Origin: Paraphysomonas bandaiensis
Lineage: Eukaryota; Protista; Chrysophyceae
Length of the DNA: 64,000 bases
Assembly: GCA_965644295.1 (NCBI GenBank)
Contig: CBFFRP010000139.1
Coordinates: 45,281-109,280 of the forward strand
Direction: 5' to 3'
The position numbers were made by a program, and so were the translations under genes. Below the pieces are notes generated by a model. It was given only the letters and a program-made list of their open reading frames with translations, ran no database searches and was not told the origin of the DNA. Positions 27,001 to 55,600 of this stretch are shown piece by piece (position 1 is the stretch's first letter; each line of letters starts with the position of its first letter).

Positions 27001-27701
27001 CGGGGATGCACTCATTGAAAAAGACGTGACTTGAGATAACAAAGTCCTTGAGTGAAGGTACATATTTGACGTACCCTGGTCCATCCTCTCGGTATCCCAT
27101 GAAGTACCCAATATGGCTGTGTGGAGACCAATCGTTTCTTCTCTGAGACTTGTCTATGAATGTATGGCATTTGCAGCCCCAAATCCTGGCGTAAGATAAA
27201 TCGGGGGCCTCGTCGTGGATGAACTGATACGGTGATATGAATCCCTTTGCAGTGGCGCATGGCAGGCGATTTTTCATATGCGTGACGGTGGACATGGCCT
27301 GTTCCCAGAAGTTGGGTGGTAGGCCTGAGTTACAAATGGATGCAAGCGTTCTTTCCTTGGTCGTGCGCCATGGTCGTTCTTGTATGGGGTTGTCTTCAGG
27401 CGTGTATGGAGCGTTGAAGGTCCAGGTTGATCCTAATTTTCTCAGCAAGTTCAGTACACGATGTGATACTAGCTCACGGCCACCATCAGCATGATAGTGT
27501 ATTAGCCGTTTGCCTTTCGAATGCAGATAATCCACAATTTTCTGAATGCACTCAATGACAAAATCCTCGGTTCTGTGTTTTTTCCATAGAATGTCCAACT
27601 GTATCTTGAAGCTGCATCGGTAGCTCCAAAGACTACGGTGTTTCCTCTGTGACTATTGCTGGAGGTGAAAATGGTCCAGTAAAATCAACTGCTATAATTA
27701 G
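24025..27701 (-). mobile_element. Ty1/Copia element (Copia-2), 3' half only: IN-RT-RNaseH-PPT-3'LTR
   Basis: IN (VDFTGP, HADGGRE, YARIWGC), RT (KARLVA, QVDFSTAY, YVDD), RNase H (DSDWA, KHIAIRYH). PPT GAGGGGGAG then an LTR at about 24025-24332; its outer end is inferred only from TG/CA. Frameshifted; 5' part replaced by a LINE. Confidence 0.92.
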
Positions 27702-29020
27702 ATCTGATTATTACATGAGAGAACTTGTTGCATTTATCTATCTATTACTTTAGACTAATTGTAACACAAAATATGAAATGCTCAGTTATCTCGGGACTGC
27801 TTGTGCATTGCTGCAAGCACCTTGGTGCAACCATCCCTTGTTTTAAGTTTAGTCTGGTGGTCGTCCTTTGGGTAGTGTGTCTGGTGGTCCATATCCGCCT
27901 GCGAGTCGGGGTGTGGGGGGTGACGTGCCATTCTGTGGATGTATGTCAGCGGAGGCTTTGGGAGTACTCTAGTTGTGGTTGCGGTTCTGTCGGAAATGAG
28001 TGTTGTCTGCCTCCGGATCGGGTTGGCAGGCCTGCGTTGGGGGCGTGGTCTCGTGTGGGGCACGGCTCTGGGGATGGATGTTACTTTAAGTAGCTGGAGG
28101 ATCGTCGGGTTGGTGGTAGGGTATGTGTGACGTGGCTGTGAGCTAGCATGAGTCGAGGTTGGTGTCATTGTTGTCGCATCGTTACTGTGAAATCGACATC
28201 CTCTGTTTTTGAGCATGTTTATTCCTCCATTGTAGAGGGGGAGCAGGACTTTGGTGACGGATTTCTCGAGTTTATGGAACTGGTGGTCGTGTAACGTGGT
28301 GGAGATGTTGTGTCCGAAAGCATTTGCCAGTTGCGAGGCTGTTAGTTGTCCGGTCCAGTATCTCTCAACCTGGGGTGTGGTGGGATCCCAGGCAGCCCTC
28401 GCCAGTCTTTGTAGGGCGGTGTGGAGCCAGGGGATGGGTTGTCGTTGCCCGTGGAGTTTTGTAAGCTGGGTTTGCTGTGTGTGGAAGGCATGTTCACGTA
28501 GTTGGGCGATCTCAGGGTGTGGACTGTGGACAGTGGAGGAGCATGTGCGCCATGTTGTCCAGGTTGTGGTCACAGTCCGTGCATTTGGCTGCTGTTGTGA
28601 GTTCGTCTCCATAATGTTTGCCCTTGGCCCTATTTCTGCCCATCGCGTATGATTTGTCCGAGACATATGCAGTTTCGCGGATGCGGTCGTGGAATGGGAC
28701 ATAGCAGTTGGACGAATTATTGGGCTTGAGAGGATGAAGTTTGTGTGGTAGCCTGGTGCCGCTGCGTGTCCAGTACTACGAGTCTCGGCTTGCGCTTGCG
28801 GGGTACGTGCCGTCACGCGTGAGGATGTATTGGTGGAGGTCCCATTGGTGTTGGAGTTCGGTGACGTCCCCTAGCATGGGTCTGCAGTCGGTGTGGAGGA
28901 ATTTGTCGTATCTTCTCCATTGCCATTGGCCGGCAGTGAGGAATTCTTCGATGAGGTGTGTGATCTCAGTCGTGACCACGCTGTAGTTTGTGCCGCCTAG
29001 TATTTTGTCGATCGCCGACC

Positions 29021-30370
29021 TGCAATGGAACTCAGGTTGGGACCTGAGAGCCAAACTCTAAATAAGCTAAAACTCGCTTTAACAGAGAGAATGCTGCTTA
29101 TTATTAACTTATACTACTTCTGCAGTACTAAATGCTTCTCGGCACCCCAAGAAACTAAAGCACAACTCACCAGCTATGCAGTTCAGTACTAAACAGAAAA
29201 AAGTGACGAGCCACAACAACCAACAAAGAGAGAACAAGCTTAACTAAAAAGAATGACGATGCGCTTGGGCGTCGACAGCCACACAGTGACTAAATCCAAA
29301 TTTTCTGCGAAGGAGTGACGATATTTATGAATGTTCTTGGAGAATTCTTCTTCTTCATACTCTACACATTAATGTATGAACTCTGCCGTATACACTCTCA
29401 ACTGCTGCTCATCTAAACGATAATGGGCACTCGACCAATCAGAATTGAGAATAGGGAAAGCATTGGTTCAGTATTCGCTTCCTGTATTTATACAGTGTAG
29501 GGTACAGTATACTGATACTGTATACCTACGAGTGACATAGACGCACACATACGATAGAGGAATACTGCAAATACATCATATACAGTGTATACGGTATACA
29601 GTGCGGTTGCTGAGAGGAGAGATGCAGCTCGCTCAACTGCCATCTTAATGTGATTGCAGCACACATACCGAACATACTTGTAAGCGAGCAGATTATCGTG
29701 AAAATTGAACAATATGTCCAGAGATGCATTACCATTGTACTCGCTAAAGACCACTGCTTCTTCAATTGCCGATATAGAGTACGAGGCGATATAGTATATT
29801 GACTGTGCAGCATCAGTACGAGGGTCCACACAGTGTGATGATCAAATGGAAGGTACCGTAAAATCATGTAATCAGTACGTACAGTCATGACAGGTGATAT
29901 ACAGGTCCTTCTTCCAGACAGAGGCGGTCTATGGCAACCCTTAGCCACCAGTAATTGGAAATGGATATATGAACCACACAGAGGCATATAATAACGGTAA
30001 AGAAGCCGCAGACACATCCACTGATTGCAGGAAAAGCACGTATACACTGTTTACGTACTATAGGTGATTGTAGAAGCTACATATGTGCATTTACAGGCCA
30101 CTGGTTGAATATAGAGCCATGTACACATATATACCATATATTAGGGTAAGGATACAACATATATATATATTCTGTAGAAGGGTCACAACCTATACATATA
30201 TGTGTGGGTGAAAGAGAGAAACTAGGTTAGTATGTACGCATATATATATGTATACATCCAAACTGTAATAATAATAACTCTTCAAAAGAATTATATATCA
30301 CAGCCCAGCATATAGAATAGAAGATAGTGCTGATGACTATAAACCTGCTTTAAACCTGCACAGGTTTACA
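29021..30370. mobile_element. Probable solo LTR (1350 bp) inserted in the LINE
   Basis: TG...CA termini and 4-bp TSD GACC (29017-29020, 30371-30374). The empty site is visible in the second LINE copy (GAGTGGTCGGCG). No convincing ORF. Confidence 0.8.
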
Positions 30371-33300
30371 GACCACTCTCCACTGGCGGCAGCGTCAGCT
30401 ATGTAGATGCCATATAGTCGTTGTAGGTCCATTTGTTCCGATCTTGTGTTCGGCGTTCTGGATGGGAGCGGACCCATCGTATTGGTCGCTGCCGGTGATT
30501 TCCTGTGGCGAGGCATTCGTAAAAGATGCCCTGGGGCTTTGTGCCGAGGGCCAGCCGCCGACGAGAGAGAGCTTCTGTGGTTCGTGTTTGGACTGCTTGG
30601 CAGTCGGTGCACATAGGTACGGTGGGGGATACAAGTTTCGAGAACGTGAGGGCTGCTGACATTGCCAGGGTCTCGTAGGTGTATGGGGTTATCCCGGGTA
30701 AGGTATGCTCGGGGGCTGTAAGAGGCGAAGGATTTTGGTTGTTCCTGTGCTCCAGTTGGTTTTGGGTGGTAGCCAGACAATTGCTGCCCCCCCGTAGTGT
30801 GTTGCGGGCTGCACGTGAGCGTCACCGAGGAGATGAGCAGGAGAGAGGTTTGTGCGAGTGAAGGAACCATCAGTGAAGATGGCTTGAAAATCGTGTGGAT
30901 GATTGGTGTGCAGTTGGAGTTGGGATTGGACCTTGTCGATGGTGTCTTGGAATTGGGACGTGGCCGGGGATGGGGGCTGCAGTCGAATTCCGAGCTGTTG
31001 TCCCCATTGGACCAGGCTAGTGATGTACAGGTCGATGTCTGGGCGATTGTGATCGTGACGTTGTAAGATGGATATGGCGGCTCGCTTGGGTTCCCCTCCC
31101 AGGGTGATGGCCCTTTGGAGTGTGTGCCACTTTTGGGTCTGGGCCCATGTGGAGAACTTACGCAAGCCAAGTCCTTTGTATTTCGTGGGCAGATAGATGA
31201 GGGCTGTGGGGTATCCTGGGGGTAGTCGGAGGACTTTCCTGGCTGCTCGTGCAAGGAGTTTGTCTATGTCCAGGCATCTGTCGTACGTCCAGGAGGCTTT
31301 GGTGGCTTTTTTGTAGAGTAGTGTCGGGAGTACTTGTGTGTTAAGCACTAACAGTTTCCAGTCTGGGGATGCACATTTGTGGCGAAGATGTGTTGCGGAG
31401 GTGGTGACGTAGTCGACACACCAGGCGTGCGAGTCGGTATCCTTCGAGGAGAACGGGAGGTGGACTCCGAGGTATTTGGTGGGGACTGTGGTGGCTCTAA
31501 TGGGGATGGTGTGCGGGTTCCAGTTCCAGTCTCTAATGGTTATGGTGGGCTCTGTTTCTAGCATGGCCTCAACTTCAAAGGGAGAGCCTATTGCAATGCA
31601 TTCCGTTTTGGCTATGGCGAGCTGCATTCCCGTGAATGCACAGAAGAATGAGAGTCTGTCCGCCTTCATCTGCGCGATGGCAATGGAGTTGGTTATTTGG
31701 GAGAGGTCGTCCGCGTACGCTTTGTCCTGACTGTCGTCCTTAAGGTCAGACCAGCAGAGGACATGTCGAAGATGACGATCCATGCGACTGTGGACTCTGT
31801 TCCGCCCTGTGTAACGCCTCTGTTGGCGAAGAAGCCCATGTCGGGGTTCCGGAGGAAAGAACCGTCGGATTGACTTAATTCCTCTAGGGTTTTAGGATCG
31901 ATGTGGTCAGCCATGTGCGGTGTCCAGATGTAGGTGCACCCCTCGCAGTCTAGTTCGCTGAGCCATTTGATCGTGTCTTCTGGAACCCCAAGTCTCGCCC
32001 ACGCGAGTTTGAGGAGGTTAGGTGCAATGGAGTCGAAAGCTTTTTGGAAGTCCCAAAAGGTGCATATTTTCGCGTTTCCTGTGAGCTTGGCCAGTTCGGT
32101 GGCCGCTAGTACACGAAGGATGGCAGTGTCTGTTCCATGTCTCCACCTGTAACCGTGTTGCGCCGGGTGTAGGACAGCGTCGTCTTCCCAGATTTGGAGG
32201 AGTCGGTGGATAATGATGCGTGTCATCAATTTGCGGAGAACCTCTAGCAAACCGATCGGTCTCAAGTTTTTGAGGGAGGTGTTTCCCGGTTTCTTGAGTA
32301 GTGGGGTCATGACTCTGTCTTTCCACCAGTGTGGGATGTGGCGGTGAGTCCAGAGCGTTTGTAGGAGACCGAGTACTTCTATTTTGACTTGTGGGGTCCA
32401 ACTTTTTATCATGTTTGTGGTGACCATGGACGGCCCGGGTGCTTTGTCCTTGGCCATATTATCAAGTGTGGAGTGGAACTCATGTATCGAAATTTGTTGC
32501 CTGAGAGGGCTTCCTGTATCTTTGCTGAGGTGGATGAGCCGACCTTTGTTTTGCATAGTTTGCGTAGTCCGGAGTGATGTTGTATCGGGATAGCGGAGTT
32601 TGGGTGGAGGGGGTTGTGTAGGTTCTCACCGGCGGTTAGTTCGCGCCACCAGTTGTCGTCGTAGTGTAATCTGTGGGCGGTGGGGTCCATGCCTTTGGGG
32701 AATGCGTGGTGTGCCGTGAAGTGTTTGTTCAGGGCTTCCTGTATCTCCGATGGAACGGTGATCGTGGCCCCGTCCTCCAGGGTGAGACGGGTGAGTGCTG
32801 GTGTCTGCTTCCGCTTTAGTCCGATGGATTGGAGGATCTTGCGTATCTGTTGTGTTTCGAGTTGGGCTTGGAGGGCGTGTGTTCTGGTGGTCATTCTTTT
32901 CCTCATTTCAGCTCGGGCTCTCCCTTGGAGCATTCGCATGAGACTGTCACGGAGGTTGTCGAAGGCTTTGCCCGTGACGTTAGTTGTGGTCCATGTTAGC
33001 ATTTGCCTTGGGTCTGTCGCGGCCCGGATGATGGCTGTGGGCGGTCGATCGTGGTCCTCTGATGAGCGGTCAAGTGTAGCAGTGGTGCGCTCCCATCTGC
33101 AGATTCCTCTCCGGACGATGCTGTAGAAGTATGCATCGGTGACACGGGGGTGTAGGTGACCGGATCTGGTAAAGAGCTTTCGTTTGAGATATACAATCAG
33201 GTGGAGTGCCAGTTGTAGGACTCTCATTTCGGCGGAGAAGCCATACTTGAACCGGGATCGTTTTCGCTGGCATTTTGCATGATGGATGCCGGTTTTCTTG

Positions 33301-34069
33301 GTTCTGTCCGCGTGACGGGTGTCGTGGGCCGCTTCTAAGGTGATACGATGGAGGAGCGCCAGTTTTATGGCTGCGTTTTCAGCGGGGTGGGGGTGCGTGG
33401 GGAGCGTGGACAATTTGTGGTGGTGTTTGTGTAGGTGGGTCTGGAATTCTTCTACCATGTCGTGGTCAGCAGGGTTGATGTTGAGCCGTGGAGGAATCTG
33501 ACGGTGCCGTTCCTTGGGAAGGGTTGGGCCTGTACCGCTAATGTCGACCTGGATCCAGACCGGTCTGTGATCAAATGGTGCAGCAGTGATGGCATCAGAT
33601 GTGTGGCATCCATTTCTAGTGTTATGAAAGTGTGTGGGTAGGGGAGAATGTAGTATATGGTCTATAAGTCGATGTGATGCCCAAACCTGGTAAAGTGATT
33701 TTACCAGGTTTTGTTGGTGGATAGTAGATAGTAAAAGTAACGTTGTTATGTTTAAACAATTACAAGTGTGTGTTGTCAACGCAATTATTATTAACTTAAC
33801 TGCTATAAGTGTTAAATTTCTACAGAGAAGTAGATAAAAAGAGCAGTACAAACTACTATCTACCTCTCCGCATTAGAAGATTCTCGTAAATTTGAAGCCT
33901 CAGGGTTTGCTCATGAGAGTGTATTTCACGAGCTGTTCGATCCTGCATAATTTGTTGTTGCATGTACTCATCGAACACATTGTGTCTGTCCACACACGGA
34001 ATCTGCTGCAGGGGTGTCGACGTCGCGACTAGAGGAGGAGAAGCGACGACTGGAAGTTCACGTAGAATT

Positions 34070-35553
34070 TCAGCTGGTGGAAGAGATACAGGCGGATTCG
34101 GTGCAGGTGCAGGCGGATTCGGTGGGTGTAGGCGGATTCGGTGCAGGTAGCGCCGCAGATTTCATTCTCTTTATCTCCTCCTGCATAGCTAGACACATCG
34201 CCCGTGATTCCTCTAGTTGCATTTGTAGTGCACCCAGTATGGGCTCACTGGAAGCAGAAGTGACCACATCCCCAACAACAACGTCCTCATCCGCATCTTG
34301 TTTATTCTCAATCTGCACATTTTACACAAATTAAATACAATAATTATTCTTAATGTATTACATCTCTTTACCTGCTTCACAGCACGAGTTTTAATTGTGG
34401 ACTTCTTCACTGGTCGAGGCTTCTTTATGCTCTTAGGCTTCACCCTTTTCTCACGAGTAAGTCCCTTCCGCTTGCGAGTGATGTTGCGGTCATCATACAT
34501 CACAACATCCACAACTGCTGGAGTTCCAGTCTCGTCCTTATTAGGTCCCTTGGTGCTATCCCAGAAGAAGTCCTTCTCATCAAACCACCGAATCAGGCTA
34601 TCTAGAATAGTCTCGTGGTCAAATGCAACGTCTGGAAGACAGGCATAGTCTTTCTTGAATTTTGATAAACCAACAACTCTAAACCACTTGGTCAGAGTAC
34701 TATCTGAAAGAGGCAATAGCATCGCATCATATCGGGGAGATACGCATTTGGTACGTAGAATGGCACCGAAGAAGTATCTTCTGCCCGCATAGTCTTGTAC
34801 CACCTGCCGACTGTGCACTAGCAATTTAAGCTTCTTGTTGAAGTGGGCAGATAGAACTACATAGTGGTACAAGGGGGGACACTTATCACAGACCTCTAGG
34901 TCAACATATAGCTTCAGTGGTGAAGCTGCAGAATCCAACTGGAACCTCTTCTGAACGTAGCACTGCATAGTCTGTCCCACCATAACAGATACAGATTCAG
35001 AATCCGTTAGAAACGATTCAACGAATATGGAGGTTGAAACGACGGGCTCAACTTCAATGACAGGTCCACCCGCTTCAACATCCACATTCTCAGGTTCTGT
35101 TGGTGTATTAATATCGACACCATCAGCAACAACAGTCGAAGCACTTTCTTCGGCATGATTAACGAATATGGAGGTTGAAACGACGGGCTCAACTTCAATG
35201 ACAGGTCCACCCGCTTCAACATCCACATTCTCAGGTTCTGTTGGTGTATTAATATCGACACCATCAGCAACAACAGTAGAAGCACTTTCTTCGGCATGAT
35301 TAACGAATATGGAGGTTGAAACGACGGGCTCAACTTCAATGACAGGTCCACCCGCTTCAACATCCACATTCTCAGGTTCTGTTGGTGTATTAATATCGAC
35401 ACCATCACCAACACCATCAACAACACCATCAACAACACTGGTCGAAGCACTTTCTTCGGCATGGTTATCGTCATATTCCACAGCCGAAAGTTGGTTGCTG
35501 TCAAAGGCTTCTTCATCTTCTTCAAGTGCTCCCTCTGCCTTCTGCTGTGCCAC
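34070..35553 (-). CDS. Transposon accessory gene, unknown function (acidic repeats, basic NLS-like tract, coiled coil)
   Basis: 446-aa ORF plus a downstream probable exon (34070-34318), inside the TIRs and divergent from the transposase. Ends uncertain. Confidence 0.6.
35020..35460. repeat. Coding tandem repeat, 3 x 141 bp (47 aa)
   Basis: AACGAATATGG recurs at 35020, 35161 and 35302; peptide NHAEESAST..VSTSIFV occurs three times. Confidence 0.95.
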
Positions 35554-35724
35554 TGAGTTATGTTATGTTATTCTCTATATGTTATTATGTGGTCCAGTCT
35601 GTTGTTTTGAATGCGTCAACAACTCATAGTTACTATATCACAACACCACTGACAGCTTTAGTGGTCATCATTATTATTGTCTGATACAGAGAGTAAGTTC
35701 CGCCGCTCTGACTGTATTGCGGAT

Positions 35725-36498
35725 TTGTTGCATGTCGTGCTACGTTGTTATGTTATGGAGAAGCTTTCTTTGTCCTGGCACATTCGGTGCCCACAGTGGG
35801 TGGCGATTCACTGTGGTGTCACACTTGTGCAGTTGTGTAGACATTGATATGCCTATTCATTGTACCCGTATATAAAAGCTGTGTTTGGTCCTGGCACATT
35901 TGGTACCCATAGTGAGTGGCGATTCACTATGTCGTACACTTGTGCAGTTGTGTAGACCTTCATAGTTTGTATATGTATGCCATATATTGTTGCATGTCGT
36001 GCTACGTTATGTTATGGAGAAGCTTTCTTTGTCCTGGCACATTCGGTGCCCACAGTGGGTGGCGATTCACTGTGGTGTCACACTTGTGCAGTTGTGTAGA
36101 CATTGATATGCCTATTCATTGTACCCGTATATAAAAGCTGTGTTTGGTCCTGGCACATTCGGTACCTATAGTGAGTGGCGATTCACTATGTCGTACACTT
36201 GTGCAGTTGTGTAGACCTTCATAGTTTGTATATGTATGCCATATATTGTTGCATGTCGTGCTACGTTATGTTATGGAGAAGCTCTCTTTGTCCTGGCACA
36301 TTCGGTGCCCACAGTGGGTGGCGATTCACTGTGGTGTCACACTTGTGCAGTTGTGTAGACATTGATATGCCTATCCATTGTACCCGTATATAAAAGCTGT
36401 GTTTGGTCCTGGCACATTCGGTACCCATAGTGAGTTGCGATTCACTATGTCGTACACTTGTGCAGTTGTGTAGACCTTCATAGTTTGTATATGTATGT
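35725..36498. repeat. Tandem repeat, 3 x ~259 bp with internal sub-duplication, between the transposon genes
   Basis: Near-identical units (ORF-track duplicates at 35916 and 36175). Each unit holds two copies of GTCCTGGCACATT..CACTTGTGCAGTTGTGTAGAC. Confidence 0.95.
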
Positions 36499-36582
36499 CA
36501 TATTATATATACTTATGTTACATCATGATGATAGCATACTATAATCATTTTAATAAGGTTTTTGTAGGTTACTGTCGGCATC

Positions 36583-39408
36583 ATGAAAGACCCGCTTGCT
36601 ATGCTCAACACCTTCTCGTCAGTTTGTTGCTGCATTGTATGCATGATGACGTGTGCATGTGGTGGCTGTTATTTGTATAGAATTAGTGATGCTGGTGCGA
36701 TTACCACAGCCCACAGAATTCGAAATGCCTGTCTAGTGGAATGTCTTCGCCTTAATAGAGGAGAAAAGAAACAGTATTTACTCGAGAAGTTCAGAACGTT
36801 TCAGGTCCATATAACAAAATATAAAAGGTATAAGTTTCGAATAGTCATTGGAGAGGGCGATAACATGCATCTCGTTTGCCGGAAAGGATTTTGTCAGGCT
36901 TATGCAGTCTCGCACTGGTATTTGGAGGATATTATTAGTCGTGTGAAACATAAGGATGTGAACTCTCTAACAGAGTTGAAAACATCTTCCACTGCAGTGC
37001 TTTCCGACATTTCAGATCGCAAGATTATAAAATTTGCTGAACAGTTTGGGATTAATCTGAGTGTTGAACAACTTGGTTCTATGCGTTTGGCGGAGTCTGA
37101 GGGATCCATGGCGTGTTCAGCGTGGATGAAGTATTACTTTTCCCTTGTCGGAGATCAAGTTCCGGATTCAGATAGTGAGATTCATCTGGAACCTATTCCG
37201 AAAAAGTGTGTGCACGAGGAGTACAAATTCGACATGGAGCAGTTAGGAGAACCTGCTTTGGAACTACAATCGTTTCTGAAGTTGTGGAAGGCTGTGTTTC
37301 CATATGTGAAAGTCCGAAAGTACAAGCAAAGCTGCGGTCACTGCAATCTATGCTCACTGTTGGCGGATACGCGTCGGAAGTACAGAGACAAAGCAGGCAG
37401 AGAGGAAGTTACAAACCTATTTGCACTCCATCGACTGTCTACTATGCAGGAGCGACGACTATACTACAGCAGGCGGCTTGAAGGTATGCATTCTGCGCCC
37501 CATGTTTTGTCTACGATATCTGATGGGATGGCACAAAACCATTGCATGCTACCATGGTTCAGCAACAATAAAATGCCGTCATATCACATCACAAACAACA
37601 CCTTCAAGGTGTGCTTGTCCATGGAAAGAATATGACGATATATCGAACTTTTGCCAATGTGGGCGGGGGAGCAAATCTTGCTATTCATACTTGGTTGTGT
37701 ACCTTGGAGGAGTTCTACAAGAATGGAAACCTTCCCAAAACCTTATACCATCAGATTGATGGTGGTTCCGAAAATGCAAATGCTGAAATGTATGCTGTAT
37801 GCGCCTTGCTTGTTTCAACTGGTGTTGTCAACAAGGTTGTGTTGACAAGGTTACCTGTGGGGCATACGCATGAAGATATCGACGGTATCTTTGCGTTGAT
37901 TTGGAGAAAATTGAGGGATGCTTACAGTTTGACCCCATCCGACTTCGCAAGCCTACTGCTCAAGGCACTGAAAAAGAAAGTTGAAGTAAATGTAGCAGAA
38001 TTGTTTGTGATTCCGGATTACGTCAATATATTTAAGGGGTGTATTGATCCGAACTTTGGTCACTATGTTAAGGAGGAGTGGACCCAGCTGCAATTTGTTT
38101 TCGAGCGCGTTGAGTCGGAAGCGGATCTCCAGTTGTATCCAATGGGAGTGAAAACTACATATCGAGCCTATGCATCAAATGAGTACATCGAAATTGTTGA
38201 AGATACTGGAAGGCAATCAATCTGTGGGCTTGTGGCTCAAGTGTGCCAGGCTGACACAAGACCCTTGCCAAATGAGCCCCCCCTGAACATTTTGACATCT
38301 CTACCCGAAGGGGATTTTGCCCCGGCTCCATTTATCAGGGGCTCTCGGGAGCTTCTATAATGAAAGTAGTAAATAAGATGAAGGAGAAATATAACAGGAG
38401 TGACCCAGCAGTTGCTCGAGAATGGCTCGAGTGGGCAGAGTTGTGTCCTCAGAGTGATAATGCCCAAGACTACGTGACTCAAACCGGTGGTTTATTCGTG
38501 CCAATGCGTGATGCTTTGTTCAGTGGCACTGGTGTTTCTCAATATGAGGTACTTTCCAGAGAGCGCGGCCAGAGAGTTGGAAGTTTTGGGCCTCGTGCAG
38601 TGGGACTAAGAAAAGTCCGTTCTACATCATGCGTGTTACATTCTGGTAATCATAGTAGCAATGCAAGGAAAACCCATTCAAGGATAATAGTTGAAGAAGC
38701 GGACGGAACTGTGGTTGACGTACCCATCGGATGCCTGAACAGCGTGTATCCTGGACGAGATGAGCAGCGTCAAGCACGAAAGGAGAAACTTAGTGTTGAA
38801 AAGAAGGCAGCACGGGATAAGAAGGCGAGGCTTGATGCCAGGAGGAGGGAGGAGGGTTGGGATTGTGGTGATATAGTTACCAATAACTCAGACAATAGTA
38901 ATCAATCTGGTATGTTGTGTTGTATATTATATATATATACTATAATGCCTTGTTTATTTCTATACAATCAGAACAAGAGGTGGAGTCATCGTCTGATGAT
39001 GGTAGCCCCTCTATCATGTATACTCCTGGTGACGAAATTATTACTGTCACTAGAATGCGTGGTACTGTCCACGCTGTCAATGATGATGGCACCTATCATC
39101 TTGTTTACAAAAGCAGGAAGAGATGTGGGGCCATCAGAGAGGATAAGGCAGTGCGCTCCAAATACTTCTCGCTTGCATCTGGTATACTTTATATATATGC
39201 TTGTTTGTGTAATATGTTCCTGATATTGGATATAGCCCACCAGGATAAGCCTCATAATACCCCCTCCAGTAAAAGAGACAGCATACCGAGGTGGAGTTAT
39301 ATTGAGGAACCTACTAAGGAGTGGGTAGATACAGGTGCAGTTGATTCTACTTCTATTATTACTGGTAAACGTGCCAGAAGTTCAGTTGATTATCGTTTGC
39401 AAGTATAG
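36583..39408 (+). pseudogene. Frameshifted DDD/E-type transposase (GHTHEDID family) with C-terminal Tudor-like segment
   Basis: CGHCNLC, ISDGMAQ, YHQIDGGSEN, RLPVGHTHEDIDGIF. Frameshifts near 37590 (ATCAC duplication) and 38360. Introns 38910-38971 and about 39182-39235. Confidence 0.8.
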
Positions 39409-40033
39409 ATAGCACTACTATGTATAATGTAACCGTTGCATTCTCACTTTTTTGACCTGTAACTAATATAAAATTTATTAAATGTCTCTAAAAACATGTA
39501 TGTTCTCTTTACAACTACTACATTATTAATTGCAAAACGCAACAAAACTTCAACTAAAATCAACATTTTCAAAATTTCACCAGGTTTCGACCGCTTATTT
39601 ACCAGGTTTGGGCATCACATCGACTTTATTCTGGAGATGCCGCGGTCTTTCCAGTAAAAGGTGTGGTATGGTGCCTCCTGGTCAAGGGTTTGTATGAGAG
39701 GGGCTGTTAGCTGCAGGGATCTTGCGAAACCTCTGAGGTCCCTTTTACCTGTTTGTCCCTCTAGGGTGGCGTTGAAATCTCCGCCAACTACTAGTACTGT
39801 GTGGTTGTTTGCCCTGGCTTTGGTGATCCATTTGGATAGGATGTTCGTGAGGATGTCGTAGGGTCCCGTGGCGCCATTCCTGTGAGCATTCTTGCCGAAG
39901 GCTTTTAGTGATGCCCACAGTGTGCAGGGTCCATCGGTCGCAGGCTTGGGGGGGAGGTACACTCCTATGGTAGTGAATCTTTCTTCTCTGTTAGGTCTGC
40001 CGGTGTGAAATTCGATTCGAGAGATGAGCCCTA

Positions 40034-40394
40034 TATATTAATACCGGTCAGTGTAGTTGTTGTGCTTGGTGTAAGTTTTTAAATGTTTTTTACTTATATT
40101 GTCGCTGTATTACTTAGTTAATATTGTACATGTTTTATATTGATGAGGCTATTTCGATACTTACAGACGCAGTAATAACAATTTCGTTGTGCTGAGCACT
40201 GTCCTGAAATCATTCTTGGAATATTGTTATTTTTTTAATAAAATAACAATAAGAATAGTATTGTATAGCTACTATAATATTATTACACAGTTTTAATAAT
40301 ATTAGATTAATGAAAACGATAAGTATAGGATAGGGTACAAAGGGGTCCAAAACGTGGGAAAAATTTTTTCCCACGTTTGTCTTAAGGTTGCTTC
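40034..40394. mobile_element. Small AT-rich insertion in the LINE APE domain, with right-end hairpin
   Basis: Removal restores GSDCTGL-GLISRIEF. Flanked by TA/TA. Hairpin AAACGTGGGAAAAATTTTTTCCCACGTTTG lies 11 nt before the terminal CTTC. Confidence 0.8.
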
Positions 40395-40506
40395 TAATCC
40401 AGTGCAGTCGGAGCCTGTGTGGCGGACTCTTCCTTTCCACGCTTCGCTGATCACTGCAATAGTTCCTCCCATGTGCGGATCGTTGGGGCCCTGTTTCCGC
40501 GTTGAG

Positions 40507-41180
40507 TTAAGGAAGTTGCAGACAAGAACCCCTGGAATCTGACTGGTCCTGGATGTAGTCAGCAAGGTATAGTGCCTGGTTTTGTGACAGGCGGACGTCG
40601 AGCAGGTAAAGACAGTCTATTTGGTGTGTGCGTATGTAGTGTAGGATAGCTTCGATTTTTCCAGGGTTGTTGGAGGGGTTACCGTTTACGTTCCATGTGG
40701 AGAATATGAAGGTCGTGGTACATGACACCAGGCTGTAGTTCGGCTCTGGGGATTTGGGTGTCGCCTGTGTATGTGATTGCTTACTGGCGATGAGATCTTG
40801 CCACTCCCGCGTGCAGAATTCAACGTCGTCAGCGTATGCCTCTCTCGCTTGTAGTAGGATCTCAAGCGGCCACTTGGGGTCTTGCCAGTATCTGTACCCG
40901 TAGTGTACAAGTAGTTCCTCGTGAGTTGCAATGTTCCGTGTGGTTCTGATGTAGATTTTGTCTTTTTTCGTGTGGAATTCTACATTAGCAGCCCTGGCCT
41001 GTAATGGATCATTGATGTACCCCGCTGCGCATAGTATGCTTTTGCTTCGTTTATCCCTTGCGTCTATCGCAAATGTACCTTTCGCGTCTTGCACAAGGTA
41101 GTCGGAAATGTAACCGGTGGACCTGGCTTCTGTGATGGGTAGGCGGTGTCCAATGTACTCAGAAATAATGGTGCACCGAG
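40507..41180 (-). CDS. SET domain core fused in frame to APE N-terminus (LINE ORF)
   Basis: TIISEYIG..DYLV..IDA..GYINDPL..ANVEF..IYIRTTRNIATHEELLVHYGYRYW, continuing without a stop into FSTWNVNG. Confidence 0.9.
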
Positions 41181-41769
41181 AGATAGTGTATATGACGTGT
41201 ATTGGTTGTGTGATGGGTATATGTTGTATATTGGTATGCTACACTTATATTCTCTCTTTGAGCCGAGTGCATGCAAGAGGCTCATGTGTACTGAGAGACA
41301 ATAGTGTATCACGTGTATTGTTTGTGTGATGGCAATGGGGGGAACTACAGTTCAATTGAGTAGTGAGAAAGTGATAAATATTCATGGACTTAGTGTGTGT
41401 TGTTCATACAGTGAAAGGAAAGTTTTATGATGTAATGTATTCATGATTGTACGTAAGTTGTATATTTAAATCACAAGTGGCTAGAAACAATATAGCTACG
41501 AGTAGGGCAATGACTGCTGGCATCATGATGATCAATGGGTTGAAAGTGGTAGTATGAGGGTAGATAACGTGGTTGCTGGTAAGCAAAAAGGCGCTTCTGT
41601 TACATCCTATATGAGACTTAAAATTATAATAAAATTAATATTTTTTGTTGTCTCTAACCCTAATACCACAAATAGAATTGTTTCTTTAACATTTCTACTT
41701 AAATACTGTAAATACTCCTAAATTTCCCAAAATATCGTAAAATTCCCACGTTTGCATAATGTTTACTTC
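41181..41769. mobile_element. Small AT-rich insertion in the LINE SET domain, related to 40034-40394
   Basis: Removal with an AG duplication restores GNALYAGEPIP-RCTIISEY. Same TTCCCACGTTTG-N11-CTTC right end. Confidence 0.75.
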
Positions 41770-41914
41770 AGGGATTGGCTCTCCCGCATACAGGGCGTTC
41801 CCCTTGGTAACTGTGTCTGCCGTGTCCATTAGTACCTTGTATCGAAGCGTTGTGTCCCAGGTGAGCGGGAGGGGTGGGTGGGCCGTTTGGAGTAGTGTGT
41901 TGAAAGGAGCCCGT

Positions 41915-43529
41915 AATGGAGTGTGTCCCAGGAGGTTCAGTCCCTGACTTATCGAGATTTCGACGCTGGGGGTGCAAGGCTTATGTGCTTATTCCCAAAG
42001 GTGATCGTCGAAAGGACTGGCAGGAGAAGTCGCAGACTGGGTATTTCATAGGTCTATCCAATACGAAAAGGAATCCCGTGTATGGCTTGGTGACAAAGAA
42101 GTCGTATCAGTACATGTTCTGTTTGATGAAAGTATACGTCCAAGAGATAAGGAGTACTATGCAGAGCTTGAAGAGGCCTTAGTCAAAACTGACCCAATCG
42201 ACATACGCTGAAAAAATTCTCACCAAATATGCAGCATTCCTTGGACCTTCAAACAAAGTTCGCAAATCTCCACTACCTGTAGATGCCATGGACAGGATTA
42301 ATTGCACTGATAGTGAGAACTCATCTCAGGAGGAAGAGGGAGTCGACAATTATCCCTATCGTAGCTTACTAGGTGCCATGCTATATCTATCAATGAATAC
42401 GCGTCCAGATATTGCGTATGCTGTTGGCCTATTGTCGCGATATGCTTTGAAACCTACAAAGGCTACATGCAAGTTGATGACTTATTTGTTACAATACATC
42501 AGGGGTACTGTGCGGAAAGATATTCGGTTCAGTGGTAAGAGCTTTGACATGCATATTTTCACAGATGCTGACTGGGCAGGCGATACTGTGTCACGAAGGT
42601 CGACAACTGGATACATTGTGTTTGCAGCAGGTGGACCACTCACCTGCCAATCAATCTTACAAGTTACTGTGTCTACGTCTTCAATGCAGAGTGAGTACCA
42701 AGCTATGTACGCTGGCATGCAAGAACTGGTGTGGCTTCGGGGGGTGTTGGCCGAATTGGGACTTCGACTGTACGAACCCACTCCATTCTTTCTAGATAGC
42801 CAGAGTGCTCGTGATCTAGCATTAAATCCAGTGTTCCACAAAAGATCAAAACACATTGAAATCAAATACCACTGGGTGCGTGAACATGTAGATCCAGAAG
42901 GACGTTTTAACACTGCGATATTGTATCACGTTGGAACTGATAACCAGACTGCAGACATATTTACGAAATCTTTGTGTGGTGTTATATATGAGAAGCATAG
43001 AAAGAGATGTCTAGGAGAAGATCAGAAGTCATCTGTGGACGTCATCAGAGAGAATTCATACAAACGAAACAGAGGCTCATAAACGTGTTGTCTACGGAGA
43101 GGCTAGCTGAAACGTCGGAGCCATACGTCCACCTGTTTGTCCTATATGGTTTCGGTGGTTGCGTATCCGTCAGTTATGCCATGTTTTACAGCTTTGAATT
43201 GAGAGGGAGTGTTGAGTTTTGCTGTTTGTGAGCAATTAAAAGCTGTAGTTTCCAAGATATTAGAATTATATCCGTTACCCAAAGAATACAGTAGTAGCTA
43301 GCTGTAGTATGAGAACCAATAATATGATAGCCATTGTAGTGATGAAACTGAAATATACTGACTGTACAAGATAGTGACGATGTAAGATCGTACTAGAAAT
43401 GGTTGGTGTAGCAGAGATAAAAAGAGTTGGTGAATGTCAATGAATGAAGTATGGTAACTCTCATAATTATATAATATTCTATGTAAGTGTTAAAGAAGGT
43501 CTTATTACAAAAAATGTCACTTTCTAACA
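41915..43529 (+). mobile_element. Copia-1 family second copy (Copia-1b), 3' part only with a further internal deletion
   Basis: Near-identical to 3758-4040 joined to about 5300-6634 at a TGACC microhomology. 3' LTR 43210-43529 has scattered substitutions relative to Copia-1a. Confidence 0.95.
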
Positions 43530-48200: not shown

Positions 48201-49153
48201 AAGTGCCAGAAGTTATTGCGCCTCCATCGGCAAGCAAAGAGCGGTCTGGGAGTCGACAGGAATCGTCTGGAGACCGGTGTGGTGAAGGTAGTCGCAGCAA
48301 TTCGGGGAGACATTTGAGCGTGTCAATAGATCCCGATGATAATGAAGATATGTATCAATCAGATAAAAACAATACAATTCTAAGCAGCGGAATGAACTGT
48401 ACGCATAACCCCGACAGAATTACTGATGAGAACACATGGGCTCCTGGTATCGAACTACTGTCTGGACGCCCCATCTCATCTCGCCACAGTAACCGGCGGC
48501 CTTCGTCTTCTACCCTTCTTCCACCATATGAGAACACAGATCCTCGTATCATTGGTACCGGTGCCCCTCAATCCCCAACTTTTATGCGTCTCCGGAGACC
48601 ATCTCCAGTGTCAGCAGGAAAGAGTGTGTCGTCATCTGTGCTGGGTATGACTCCACCGGGATCCGCTACTCGCCGTCGAATCATTGGCCCTTCTTCTCCA
48701 ACAAAAATTAATATGCTTCAACAGATCAACTCTGTGGAGCAATCTGTAAATGGTGGAGGTGTGTCTTCTAAAAGAAATGATTCTGTCACTGAGACTAAAC
48801 TTAAGACGCGACGTATGAGCATGCCGAAGAACCTCACTGTTGTGAAGAGAAAGGATGATAATTCAGGAAGGAGCACATATGAAGAGAAAGACGGAGACAA
48901 TATTGACAGTAAACGACACCAAAAAGCCATGGAGTCTGAGAATACTGCAGTCCGAAGTATGAGGAAGATGTCTGCCGTGGACAGTAATGCTGTTGTGAAG
49001 GATATTGAAGGTGCACCTACTCAATTGGACTTAAATATCATGAAAGCCGGTGAAATGGTAAAGCGCTCAGCTGTTAAGCGGGAAGATTCCTTTGATCGAT
49101 TCACGCGAGTAGTAATCAACAGGAAAAATAAGGGGAAATCAAGTATTTTATAG
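45212..49153 (+). CDS. Large protein: N-terminal RanBP2-like zinc finger, second CxxC...CxxC motif, long disordered tail
   Basis: WGCLTCKALKNDNRSKKCSFCG; VPCALCE...RLCLFCTQFF. An intron at about 46322-46372 joins the 384-aa and 906-aa ORFs. Confidence 0.75.
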
Positions 49154-49699: not shown

Positions 49700-52600
49700 T
49701 ATTAGGATTCAGCTTAATACATGATTGTATCTGTGAGTTAAATGAAATATGTCATGAACCATGAACTGAATTAGAGAGAGTATCTGTCGAAGATACATGA
49801 TCGTCATCCTAACGTCGTCATTATCAGTTACGCTTCTAACTATTCCGTTGTGCATGATAGTTATGTTCTATACTGTTATTCGTAATTTTCACCCTATCGT
49901 GTTCATTACCTTACACTCTAATAATCACAACATTGTTTTAGTATTATAAAGATCAATTCTTTATTTGGTAGCGAGATGTCAGATAAAGTTACAAGTTACG
50001 ACTCAACCGACTCGGATTCGACAACCGACAAGCGAAAGGACTCAATGCCGAAATTCGATGCAAAGAACTTCTCCAGGTGGCAGAAGAAGTGCCGTGCATG
50101 GTTCTATCGCAAGCCTAAGATCGTTTATACTCTACAGAACGATCACCCTATTGAGCCTGAAGCAGGAGAAAACTCAGATGACGAGGACTGCCAGTATCGA
50201 CTCGAACAGTATCACGATGCGAAACGATATTATGATGAAGGTAATAACTACCTATGGTGAGTCATTGCAAGCTCTATCATTGGTCAGAATGAAGAGGCTG
50301 AAGGGATTTTGGAGAACGTCCCCGATTGAGATGGTAAAACCGCCTGGACCGACTTGTTGAACCACTTCAAGAAAAAAACGACTAATGACGTAATCACTGA
50401 TCTGATTGGACAATTCCAGAGCATAAAAATCAAAAAAGGTCAGTCGATAATCAACTTTCTTGACGCTGTCGAAAAGCTCACTGTTGAAACAAGCTGATTA
50501 ATTATGGTCATCGGATAAGTGACCAAGATTTAATATGACGCATTCGCCAAGGCCTGGTATCCAAAGAAAATATGACGTATCGTGAACTGGCAATCGACCT
50601 CCAAATGCACCCTATCGATGCCTACAAAACACTGATACGCAGACTACGCGGATTAGGAAGCTCGTCTGTTGGAATGCTCTTGTCAAGCAACGAAGAAACA
50701 AAAACCGACAGTATTCAGCTTGCAGCCTCAAAACCCCCATTTTCCCGAAATAAAGGGGACATCTTTCAGAAACCGTTCCAATAAACTGAAACATGACAAG
50801 AGAGCTGATAAAGACATTAAGTGTTTCCGATGCGATGGAAAAGGACACATCATCGCTGCTGAATGCAAGCACTCATGGGAAAGGATCCAACAGATGAAGA
50901 ATTCCTCTGGAACCAAATCAACTAGTAGGAAATTCAAGAAAGTTAGATTCCAGACCCACCAAAGCACTGAAAACGACGACTCCGACCAATTTGCAGATTA
51001 TGAAGACAGTGGCCCATTACTACAGAAAGGACGAGACTTCGGAGGAGTCAGCTATCCAATAAACGAATGTGATCAAGAAGCCGGAATGGGAACCCTTGAT
51101 TCTGGCTGCACAGTCTCAATCACACCTGAAGCCGGATACATCACTAATTATGTGGAATGCCTCACTGATATTCAAACAGCTATTAAGTCAGGATCGACTA
51201 TGACCTCTTCAGGTCATGGAAGACTTGGTATTATCCCTAAGTGCAAGCACGTGGACCATGCTTCAAGGACACTCGTGTTCATCAGCAAATTAGATGACCT
51301 ATGATATAAAATCTTGTTCGGAAACCAATCAGTTGAGGTATATAAAGATGAAAAAATACTGCTATCAAAGGGAAAGAGAGTTGGAGGCCTACGATACGAA
51401 ATTCCGTTAACAGACCTCGGTACCCCTATTGACGAATCCCACCTTGCTTCAACTGCTGCAGGCCCACTCGCAACCCTAGCACATAAGAGATTGGCACATT
51501 CTTCAATTAGACTCATATATACAGAAAGCTATACAGTCAAAATTAGTAACGGGTATTAAGTTAACGAAGTCGGAGATGAATGCTACTTCTTTACCGGGCG
51601 GTTTATGTGATGGATGTGCGACAGGAAAATCCCATAGTAGACCTGCCACCTGCCAAATGTTGCTGAAAAGAATGAGAAAAGCGAAGGAGCTGGGGGAGCT
51701 CATAGTAGCAGATTTCTCAGGGCCGCATGCACCCCATGCAACTGGAAACCGATACGTACTCGGGATTGCTGATGTAGCATCAAGGCACCAGTGGGACTCA
51801 TACGGACCAACGAGAGATGAAGATTTTGTCATCCAATCCATCCAGAAAGTTGTTGTTTATCTACTACATAGTATAAGGGCAAAACGGCTACAACATTATC
51901 ATGCAGACGGCGGGAAGGAACTGGTATCAAGATCCAGAGGGGCCACACGTGGACTTTCAACTCCCCATATACCTCCGAGGATAACCCATTCCAGGAACGC
52001 CCATGGAGGACTATTAAAGAACGAGCACTCAGCAGCTTGATGGATTCCGACCTTCCAGCAAATTTCTGGGAACAAGCTATGAAGACGTCCACACACATGA
52101 AGAACAGGCTACCATATATGTCAGACAGCAAAAGAATTTATGTCTCCGCTCTTTCACACGCACTAACCTCTCTCCTGCTCATCTACTAGGTGACTCACAC
52201 ACACAGCCCGCAACGCACAACGGGGGGGCAGCAATCGTCTGGCTTCCGCCCAAAACCAAATGGAGCACAGGAATAACCAAAATCCTACGACTTACAGCCC
52301 CCGAGCATACCCTACCCGGGCTAATCCCATACACCTACGAGACCCTGGCAATGTCAGCAGCCCTCACGTTCTCGAAACTCGTATCCCCCACCGTACCTAT
52401 GTGCACCGACTGCCAAGCAGTACAAACACGAACCACAGAAGCTCTCTATCGTCGGCGGCGAGCTCTCGGCACAAAGCTCCAGGGCATCTTTTACGAATGC
52501 CTCGCCACAGGAAATCACCGGCAGCGGCCAATCCGATGGGTCCGCTCCCATCCAGAACGCCGAACGCAAGATCGGAACAAATGGACCTACAATGACTATG

Positions 52601-55600
52601 GCATTTACATAGCTGACGCTGCCGCCAGTGGAGAGTGGTCGGCGATCGACAAAATACTAGGCGGCACAAACTACAGCGTGGTCACGACTGAGATCACACA
52701 TCTCATCGACGAATTACTCACTGCCGGCCAATGGCAATGGAGAAGATACGACAAATTCCTCCACACCGACTGCAGACCCATGCTAGGGGACGTCACCGAA
52801 CTCCAACACCAATGGGACCTCCACCAATACATCCTCACGCGGGACGGCACGTACCCCACAAGTGCAAGCCGAGACTCGCAGTACTGGACACGCAGCGGCA
52901 CCAGACTTCCACACAAACTTCATCCCCTCAAGACCAATAATTCTTCCAAATGCTATGTCCCATTCCACGACCGCATCCGCGAAACCGCATATGTCTGGGA
53001 TAAATCCTACGCGATGGGCAGAAATAGAGCCAAGGGCAAACATGGAGACGAACTCACAACAGCAGCCAAATGTACAGACTGTGACCACAATTTGGACAAC
53101 ATGGCGCACATGCTCCTCCACTGTCCACAGTCCACACCCTGAGATCGCCTAAATACGTGAACATGCCTCCCACACACAACAAACCCAGCTTACCAAACTC
53201 CATGGGCAACGACAACCCATCCCCTGACTCCACAATGCCCTACGTAGACTAGTACGGGCTGCTTGGGATCCCACCACACCCCAAGTTGAGAGATACTGGA
53301 CCGGACAACTAATTAACAGCCTCGCAACTGGCAAATGCTTTCGGACGCAACATTTCCACCTCGCTACACGACCACCAGTTCCATAAGCTCGAAAAATCCG
53401 TCACCAAAGTCCTGCTCCCTCTCTACAATGGAGGAACAAACATGCTCAAAAACAGAGGCTGCAGATTTCACAGTATCGATGCGACAACAATGACACCACC
53501 CTCGACTCATGCTAGCTCACAACCACGTCGCATACACCCTACCACCAACCCGAAAATCCTCCAGCTACTTAAAGTAACATCCACCCCCAGAGCCGTGCCC
53601 CCCATGAGACCTCGGCCCCAACGCAGGCCTGCCAACCCGATCCGGAGGCAGACGACACTCATTTCCGACAGAACCACACCCACAACTAGTAATCCCAAAA
53701 CCCCCGCTGACACACATTCACAGAATGCCACGTCACCCCTCACACCCCGGCTCGCATGCGGATCTGGACCACCAGACACATTACCCAAAGGAAGACCACC
53801 AGTCTAAACTTAAAACAAGGGATGGTTGCACCAAGGTGCTTGCAGCAATGCACAAGCAGTCCCGAGACAACTGAGCATTCCATAATCTGTGTTACCACTA
53901 ATCTAGAGTAATTGATAGATAAATGCAACAAGTTCTCTCATGTAATAATCAGATATTCTGTGTATGTCTCCGCTCCAATTTATCGAAAATGAGGTGCCAG
54001 ACTTGAGTTATGCCAGAATATGGGGATGTAACTGCTTTGTGAATATCGATTCCAGTCTCCGAAAGAACAACTGGGACAGACATAGCTGGCCTGGGTATCT
54101 TATGGGCTATCGAGAGGATGGTCCCGGATATATAGTCTTTGTTCCCGCATTGAGAGATTTTGTTATTTCTGGACATGTATTTTTCAACGAATGTGTTCCA
54201 CCAGCGGATAAGAGATATTTTAAGGAGATAAATGAGATCTTCAGAGAGAATGTGACCTCCAGGACAGTAGGAAGTTTCAAATATCTCATAGGCCTTGCAC
54301 ATGTAGATCCAGAAGATATGTAACGACTCAAATAAAGCTCATAAAAGGACTAATCGCAGCGTACTATGGTCTAGTGGACAACAGCGGTGACACTACACGC
54401 CTCATTCAGCTCGACGACCCCATTCACGCTGCAGACGTCGAAAAGTACACTGAAGAATACATAGAACTCAAAGCAGTTGGTCCCAAACGTAGTAATTCTC
54501 GATCGAAAACCCCAATAAATAAATCCAGCAAATTAGATCGAGACCCCGATACAGTTAAAATGGATCTCCAGCGCCAGCCGCTACTTCCAGGGGGAGTGGC
54601 GTGAACCTAAGACATCATGATGCCGCGCAGGAGAGAATCAGCAGCCATCGGGATGAACCTACGCACTCCGATGCAAAGATAGCAAAGACTCGCCCTTCGA
54701 TACAATTCAATGGGAATCTAGTGCCGAATCCGGCACCACACAGTCAAGTGGACCGTGTGTGTGTGTCAGCGTGTGTGGCCAAACGCTGTTACAAGCCTGC
54801 TGATTCATCGGGAGATTGGGGAAATCAGGGTACACCTGAAAAGGGCCAAAAGTAAGATCCATGCTACAGTGCTGTACAAATTTTATGCTAGATATGGGTT
54901 TTACCAGCAGACTAATATCTGACCCGTGTATATTCAAAAAGCAGATTAATGGCAGGATTATGCTAATAGCCATGTGTATGTGGATGATATTATTATAGCA
55001 TCTACAACCGACACTGATATCCAACAATTCAAAGACCATTTATCCAAAAAGTTCGAAATTACGGATCTCGGACTCTTAGATTATTACTTTTGGGCATTTC
55101 CATCCATCAAGACTTTGATAAGAATATCACGACTCTCAGTCAGGAGCAGTATGTCAACAAACTACTGGATAAATTCAATATGTCCACCTGTAAACCCATG
55201 TCAACACCTATGTTACTGTCCTTTAACTATGATTTACATGAATATACAATCATCTTTCAGAGTCAAATCAAAGTTATGTTCAGAATTTCCCCTACAAGGA
55301 GCTCATAGGTTCCCTGATGTATGGCTACGCTCTTTATTATCAGAAATTTGTTTCAAACATCCATTCTCAACAACTATTTGGTGCGATAATAAAGGTGCAG
55401 TCCAATTATGTTACAATAATCCTACTCATCATCGACGTACAAAACATATCGCAATTCGATATCACTTCATCCGTGAGCATATTGCCGAGAACATTTTGAC
55501 GGTTGATCACATATCCACAAAAAGTCAATGTTAGCCGACCTCCTTACAAAACCACTAGGAGCAAATCACTTCAGCACATTGTGAACTACATTGATGGGGA

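Follow-up and report, generated by a model that had tools for sequence, protein, structure and literature searches.

A LINE retrotransposon family of Paraphysomonas bandaiensis with a SET domain encoded in frame ahead of its endonuclease and reverse transcriptase

Mobile elements joined to a chromatin-related domain are already known. Chromoviruses are Ty3/gypsy elements with a chromodomain in the integrase, which reads marks and does not write them, and primate SETMAR arose when a SET gene of the host took up a mariner transposase, and is a single domesticated locus and not a mobile family. A minimal SET domain of a genetic parasite is found in vSET of Chlorella virus PBCV-1 (PDB 1n3j), a free-standing viral protein of 119 aa. 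The nearest precedent for a transposon carrying a SET domain is the proto-Helentron of Phytophthora infestans, which has a Clr4-like SET ORF with a strong SMART match (Thomas, Vadnagara, Pritham 2014, PMC4067079). Additionally, Helentrons of P. infestans and animals carry OTU-like proteases and an APE-type endonuclease (PMC4067079). Among non-LTR retrotransposons, the known accessory domains include a Ulp1-like protease (NeSL, Utopia) and RNase H, the latter in the I group, plant L1, Proto1 and Dualen (PMC4640811).

The element described here lies in a stretch of 64,000 nt from Paraphysomonas bandaiensis (GCA_965644295.1, contig CBFFRP010000139.1, positions 45,281–109,280 of the forward strand), the whole of which we call the window. 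At 41914..27693 on the minus strand stands a dead member of a family of APE-type non-LTR retrotransposons (LINEs). As in other elements of this type, APE and RT share one ORF, a CCHC knuckle stands at the C-terminus, extra enzymatic domains are fused to the protein, and 5′-truncated copies have a common 3′ end and a target-site duplication. In contrast to the described non-LTR clades, which lack SET in the literature searched, this LINE has a SET domain, an unusually long ORF and no poly(A). In the full-text papers that we searched, SET or histone-methyltransferase domains were described for no LINE, and within that literature the architecture appears to be without a prior report.

The proto-Helentron is likewise a SET-carrying transposon of a stramenopile. 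However, Helentrons are rolling-circle DNA transposons with Rep/helicase and a separate SET ORF, whereas the domain studied here is encoded in frame within the polyprotein of a retrotransposon and falls into a divergent Y-I-N-D-P subgroup rather than being Clr4-like. In SETMAR, the direction of the fusion is opposite to that in the SET-bearing LINE. The C-terminal motif region of vSET matches our SET profile (E 4e-6), but vSET stands alone and is not part of a polyprotein.

Across the family, ORFs are ~2800–3700 aa long, with ~1000–1850 residues ahead of APE. The best explanation, which we hold with high confidence, is a single giant ORF that reads N-terminal modules, SET with a helical extension, linker, APE, RT, RNase H-like region and CCHC. 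To describe the window copy, we used as a reference an intact relative on contig C644 of the same genome. With blastn, C644 7546–13464 aligns to window 41914..27693 in five blocks of 94.5–97.3% identity. The pieces of the window copy were searched one by one. The resulting features are as follows.

27693..41914, minus strand: whole degenerate, 5′-truncated LINE copy of subfamily A with four nested inserts (blastn against the intact C644 copy)
41770..41914, minus strand: start of the truncated copy, comprising 36 codons ahead of SET and the first SET strand, with KGNALYAGEPIP at 41805..41770 (translation, blastn)
41173..41768, plus strand: insert 1, a 596-bp non-coding repeat splitting the SET domain, not in intact copies
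40885..41172, minus strand: SET core, C-terminal two thirds, with GYINDPL at 41022..41002 and, at 40920..40885, EELLVHYGYRYW with the catalytic-type Tyr (Pfam SET and PRDM2_PR above cut-off)
40705..40884, minus strand: conserved post-SET helical extension, then a variable linker to APE (invariant columns, model helices)
40394..40704, minus strand: APE N-terminal part, in frame with SET, with FSTWNVNG at 40704..40681 (translation, Pfam)
40034..40393, plus strand: insert 2, a 358–360-bp non-coding repeat, not in intact copies
39627..40033, minus strand: APE middle part, with GGDFNA at 39785..39768 (weak Exo_endo_phos match, alignment to C644)
33666..39626, plus strand: insert 3, a DNA transposon of 5961 bp that has a TAT duplication and a transposase-like ORF (DUF7869), not in intact copies
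30371..33665, minus strand: APE C-terminal end, RT and, at 30883..30456, a region of RNase H-like motifs, frameshifted at several places (Pfam, motifs, C644 alignment)
29021..30370, strand not given: insert 4, 1350 bp, not in the intact copy
27693..29020, minus strand: C-terminal region with the CCHC knuckle (28583..28530), ORF end and a short 3′ UTR without poly(A) (C644 alignment, motifs)
52139..53973, plus strand: second, shorter 5′-truncated copy of the same LINE family (3′ 1.8 kb), flanks included (blastn, 91.5% identity to C644 11663–13455)

The window copy begins 36–38 codons ahead of SET and is without the first 5.4 kb of an element of ~11.3 kb, and in the intact element ~1800 more residues stand upstream of SET. 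The 5′ end of the element is itself provisional, given that the 3731-aa ORF of C644 is preceded in the same frame by a 703-codon open stretch (L031:2-2110), with one stop between them. Part of this stretch recurs on contig C363 at 99% identity, and no Pfam domain was found in it.

Past insert 1, the SET reading resumes with TIISEY, followed by GYINDPL and the segment with the catalytic-type Tyr, and it reaches the APE start FSTWNVNG without a stop, just as the earlier note had read it. That note had also proposed that an insert at 41181–41769 splits the SET domain. The insert is there, but comparison with C644 moves its bounds to those listed above; at the joint, the window copy reads RC where C644 has AH, a few bases being altered. 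All four inserts which the note counted were recovered by the same comparison. The APE N-terminal part carries a 4-nt frameshifting insertion near 40545, and the window copy as a whole has at least 7 frameshifting indels, which mark it as dead. Thus, with its first 5.4 kb absent, its SET domain split and its ORF frameshifted, it cannot perform the role that we propose below for SET.

Insert 1 has 78 genomic matches, many of which are 5′-truncated and end at the same 3′ position, as retroposons do. Elsewhere in the genome, the first 160 bp of this insert form tandem arrays (C95:21214-23423 and C355:8441-10039 are examples). For insert 2, there are five further copies at 100% identity and several 5′-truncated ones, and the identical copies indicate very recent movement. 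Close to the plus-strand 3′ end of insert 2 lies a palindrome of 29 bases (~40350–40378). Insert 3 has perfect 29-bp terminal inverted repeats starting AAGTCGATG, its DUF7869 ORF lies at 37611–38360 (90 bits), and a second ORF with internal repeats is found on the other strand. An Rfam scan of 27000–43000 gave no RNA family at E<=0.1; by that test, the small inserts are not recognisable ribozymes or tRNA-derived SINEs.

Fragments of Copia integrase and RNase H stand on both sides of the LINE and on opposite strands (41916–43082, plus; 26600–27652, minus), with the 5′ end of the window copy abutting the integrase fragment that starts at 41916. The LINE thus sits in a nest of transposons that has been rearranged, and its 5′ junction may not be the original one. 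No target-site duplication is visible around the 41914..27693 copy. Further along the window, a Ser/Pro/Arg-rich open frame of 906 codons (46433–49153, plus) is adjoined by a 384-codon ORF (45212–46366) with no Pfam domain.

The second LINE copy, at 52150–53962, is flanked by an 11-bp target-site duplication, TATGTCTCCGC (52139–52149 and 53963–53973). Both truncated window copies share the 3′ end sequence of full copies, which end in ...ATCAGATCTATTTATA with no A run or simple-repeat tail seen. A poly(A) tail is absent in several LINE clades, so its absence here does not exclude LINE membership. Taken together, the 5′ truncations, the single shared 3′ end and the target-site duplication show that the family inserts by target-primed reverse transcription.

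On the window alone, one might suspect a chance mosaic, as the SET domain is split by AT-rich inserts and adjoins other transposons. SET-APE could then reflect the one-off capture of a host SET gene, an error of assembly, or an intron-bearing host gene. The wider genome speaks against all three. When a 223-aa piece across the SET-APE junction was used as a query against the 62.5-Mb genome, we obtained ~95 matches, of which ~40 cross SET and APE without a stop. They form several diverged subfamilies at ~96, 76, 67 and 44% identity, and the open frames that bear the junction reach 3731 aa and read SET-APE-RT. Weaker matches to SET only were seen at C661:12617, C476:5041 and C654:17875.

In an intact ORF, Pfam finds SET (55.3 bits, full model 1–105), Exo_endo_phos (46.3) and RVT_1 (68.8) in one frame, and SET, APE and RT are likewise found in the 44%-identity subfamily. 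The claim of the earlier note, namely that of a LINE with an in-frame SET directly ahead of APE-RT, thus holds family-wide, and SET is present in the other copies, where the note had suggested to look for it. Additionally, four independent public runs each yielded contigs that extend across SET and APE and have no joint at the boundary. None of the runs listed is recorded as RNA; these contigs are up to 53 kb long and probably derive from DNA, and show presence and continuity only. The element was seen in runs from 14 studies, mostly of marine metagenomes.

The family is also mobile on a recent time scale. Among 16 loci of the 44%-identity subfamily (subfamily E), the median pairwise identity is 99.7% over at least 2 kb, which indicates recent amplification. 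The comparison of dN/dS across copies that the earlier note had called for gave values far below 1 (Nei-Gojobori, between subfamilies): 0.05–0.16 for SET, 0.10–0.14 for APE and 0.22–0.41 for the linker. SET is therefore as constrained as the endonuclease. Thus, this is a young LINE family of many copies and without introns, in all of which SET is read in frame and kept by purifying selection at family level. The inserts, being dispersed repeats that intact copies lack, are rejected as introns. The junction count, the Pfam matches in intact ORFs, the absence of the inserts and the dN/dS values together refute a one-off capture, an artefact or an intron-bearing gene, to which we leave next to no probability.

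The window copy itself yields recognisable SET sequence: the segment window:40510-41178:- scores 26.3 bits for SET (cut-off 22.4) and 30.7 for PRDM2_PR (cut-off 27), with a weak Exo_endo_phos match in frame behind it. Across subfamilies, the conserved columns are C-A-A-G-Y-I-N-D-P-L, A-N-V-x-F and E-E-L/I-L-x-x-Y-G. They are followed by a conserved post-SET extension of ~35 residues with invariant W, E, I, L, Q, A, R and Y columns, predicted as helices 125–159 of the model at high pLDDT; a cysteine-rich post-SET is not present. A scan of 1.84 billion representative proteins gave 230 hits, and 56 SET regions were aligned.

AlphaFold2 run on this alignment of 56 sequences returned a model with pLDDT 91. 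Foldseek matched it at probability 1.0 to MLL5 (the top structural match), LegAS4, MLL3, SETD8, G9a, SET7/9 and PRDM2, and VIA-align to solved SET domains gave Z 11–13 over 100–116 residues. The structural matches also include Set1, MLL1, PRDM3/5 and EZH2, and no single family stands out. The profile and structure matches which the earlier note had wished to see are thus in place, and by the predicted model the domain has a genuine SET fold.

Whether this fold is catalytic is a separate question, which the earlier note rightly left open because of the N-D-P variant. In all copies the His of NHxC is Asp (Y-I-N-D-P), and the first Gly-x-Gly cofactor motif reads G-x-A in the copies of this genome. 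Mutating the NHxC His of SUV39H1 (H324) abolishes activity, so catalysis by an N-D-P SET domain cannot be assumed. Yet Asn76 and Tyr113 are invariant in the 56 aligned sequences, where the subgroup consensus is A-G-Y-I-N-D-P-L-D, and these two residues (NHxC and ELxxxY motifs) align to the Asn and Tyr of Set1, MLL3 and LegAS4. In sequence terms, N-D-P in the place of NHS is thus a hallmark by which this SET subgroup is recognised.

The best PDB sequence-profile match is Legionella LegAS4 (E 7e-9), in which Y-I-N is likewise not followed by His and the Tyr is kept. LegAS4 (RomA-type, PDB 5czy, 8swi) further has N-x-E-F and L-L-I-N-Y in common with the SET domain studied here, and according to its PDB entry title it was crystallised with a histone H3 peptide. 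However, it is a secreted bacterial effector that is flanked by different domains and unconnected with reverse transcription, and identity is ~30%. Since LegAS4 also lacks the His, the concern about N-D-P is real but not disqualifying. On balance, we predict, with odds only slightly better than even, that the SET domain is an active S-adenosylmethionine-dependent lysine methyltransferase.

The same features bear on a rather unlikely alternative, in which SET is a non-catalytic module that binds histone tails or chromatin, tethers the RNP and guides target choice, like the chromodomains of chromoviral Ty3/gypsy elements. The change of His to Asp in all members and of G-x-G to G-x-A would fit such a module, and so would the finding that PR-domain models score as well as SET, as some PR/SET domains have no demonstrated activity. 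MLL5 as the top structural match points the same way; its SET domain is reported to be without methyltransferase activity. Pure binding, however, would not need the catalytic-type Tyr, which together with the Asn is invariant across the alignment, and LegAS4, the closest solved sequence relative, is reported to be an active histone methyltransferase and is likewise without the His.

A second, divergent SET-like domain was detected ~1300 residues upstream of the main SET, in subfamily A only (L031:3665-4036, C644). It scores 20.9 bits in Pfam, hhalign against the SET alignment gives it a probability of 88% (E 3e-6), and it carries the motifs C-C-N-T and E-E-I-L-L-D-Y-G. The window copy has lost the part that holds this domain.

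Relatives of the element occur among metagenome proteins. At 25–40% identity, P0002, P0003, P0009, P0008 and P0116 read SET then APE, and P0016, P0051 and P0163 have the order SET-APE-RT; in more distant relatives, the SET scores are near or under the Pfam cut-off. A permuted order, RNase H, APE-RT, OTU, SET and Ulp1, is found in two giant LINE-like polyproteins (L049:3001-13599), P0011 (3532 aa) and P0012 (3923 aa). In P0011 and P0012 all of these domains have significant Pfam matches except APE, which was shown by BLAST. P0012 belongs to a cluster of 11 members, whose contigs measure 2–16 kb; 7 of these members are near full length (3918–3923 aa). In P0053, Ulp1 is joined to SET. The presence of both the same and the permuted orders makes the SET subgroup a recurrent passenger of LINE-like elements, in which, judging by these protein sequences, it often travels with ubiquitin-type proteases. 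A protein search with the OTU-like-SET-APE stretch gave nothing at E<=0.001, but such a search depends on shared words and length, and a blank means little.

The coupling of the SET subgroup with OTU and Ulp1 in P0011, P0012 and P0053 suggests a protein-modification toolkit that is not purely chromatin-directed. It would fit a SET domain active on non-histone targets, such as the polyprotein or RNP of the element or host proteins of restriction, repair or ubiquitin pathways. SET7/9 and SETD8, which also methylate non-histone proteins, are among the structural neighbours. On the other hand, no sequence feature points to a specific substrate, and the best solved relatives act on histone H3 or H4; we regard this reading as unlikely.

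The remaining modules of the polyprotein are resolved to different degrees. RT, which the earlier note had named, scores 53 bits for RVT_1 in the window (Pfam 32295..31747) against 69 bits in the intact copy, has YADD at 31717..31706 and matches R2 and human L1 ORF2p RT in PDB. The CCHC knuckle of that note also stands, as C-x2-C-x8-H-x4-C at 28583..28530. Its RNase H holds only in part. The conserved motifs are present (FTDGS, Y-x-Y-E, TDC-x-AV in the form TDCQAV, WVRSHPE and IADA), but neither Pfam at E up to 10 nor the PDB profile search gave an RNase H match, and hhalign aligned the TDGS motif only. The region is thus RNase H-like by its motifs.

The part of intact copies that precedes SET holds as many as three paralogous modules with G-Y/F-C and H-Y/F-Y/F motifs, including a conserved pair of I-P-x-x-G-Y-C-A-Y and A-H-Y-Y/F. 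They have no match to OTU (PF02338) in Pfam at E up to 10. Compared with the Pfam-verified OTU regions of P0011 and P0012, their hhalign probability is 1.3%, and BLAST and hhalign align the Cys motif only. AlphaFold2 on a 5-sequence alignment of the modules gave pLDDT 40, which is too low for a fold search, and ESM Atlas offered no more than weak leads (0.87), to hypothetical proteins associated with PIF1. The short motif (Y/F)-S-S-D-x-S-G-D-G-P recurs 1–3 times per ORF where the N-terminal modules meet their neighbours (L031, L034, L043, L044, L045) and is conserved across subfamilies (intact ORFs of five). This motif may serve for processing or for docking; a 2A-like NPGP motif was found in no ORF.

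The most far-reaching reading of what SET does, at a probability of roughly 0.4, is an old and widespread LINE lineage of marine protists with its own active lysine methyltransferase, which would write a histone mark or modify a host or RNP protein at integration. Made in cis on one polyprotein with APE and RT, the SET domain would reach the nicked target with the RNP. There it would methylate a histone tail or another chromatin protein, or else its substrates might be the element's own proteins or host proteins. From their sequences, some branches of this lineage appear also to carry OTU or Ulp1 proteases and, in subfamily A, the putative second SET-like domain.

The Y-I-N-D-P subgroup, which is common to the environmental relatives and closest to LegAS4, is an uncharacterised branch of SET enzymes. 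Transposons are usually viewed as targets of host chromatin marks. A LINE with a conserved SET domain in cis would, if our reading is true, be a parasite able to write lysine methylation or to dock onto it, and if the domain is active, it would be a retrotransposon-encoded chromatin writer. With such an element, it can be tested directly whether a transposon determines the chromatin state around itself or guides its own integration, and these tests are practical, as the family is young, multi-copy and intronless and resides in a culturable bacterivorous flagellate.
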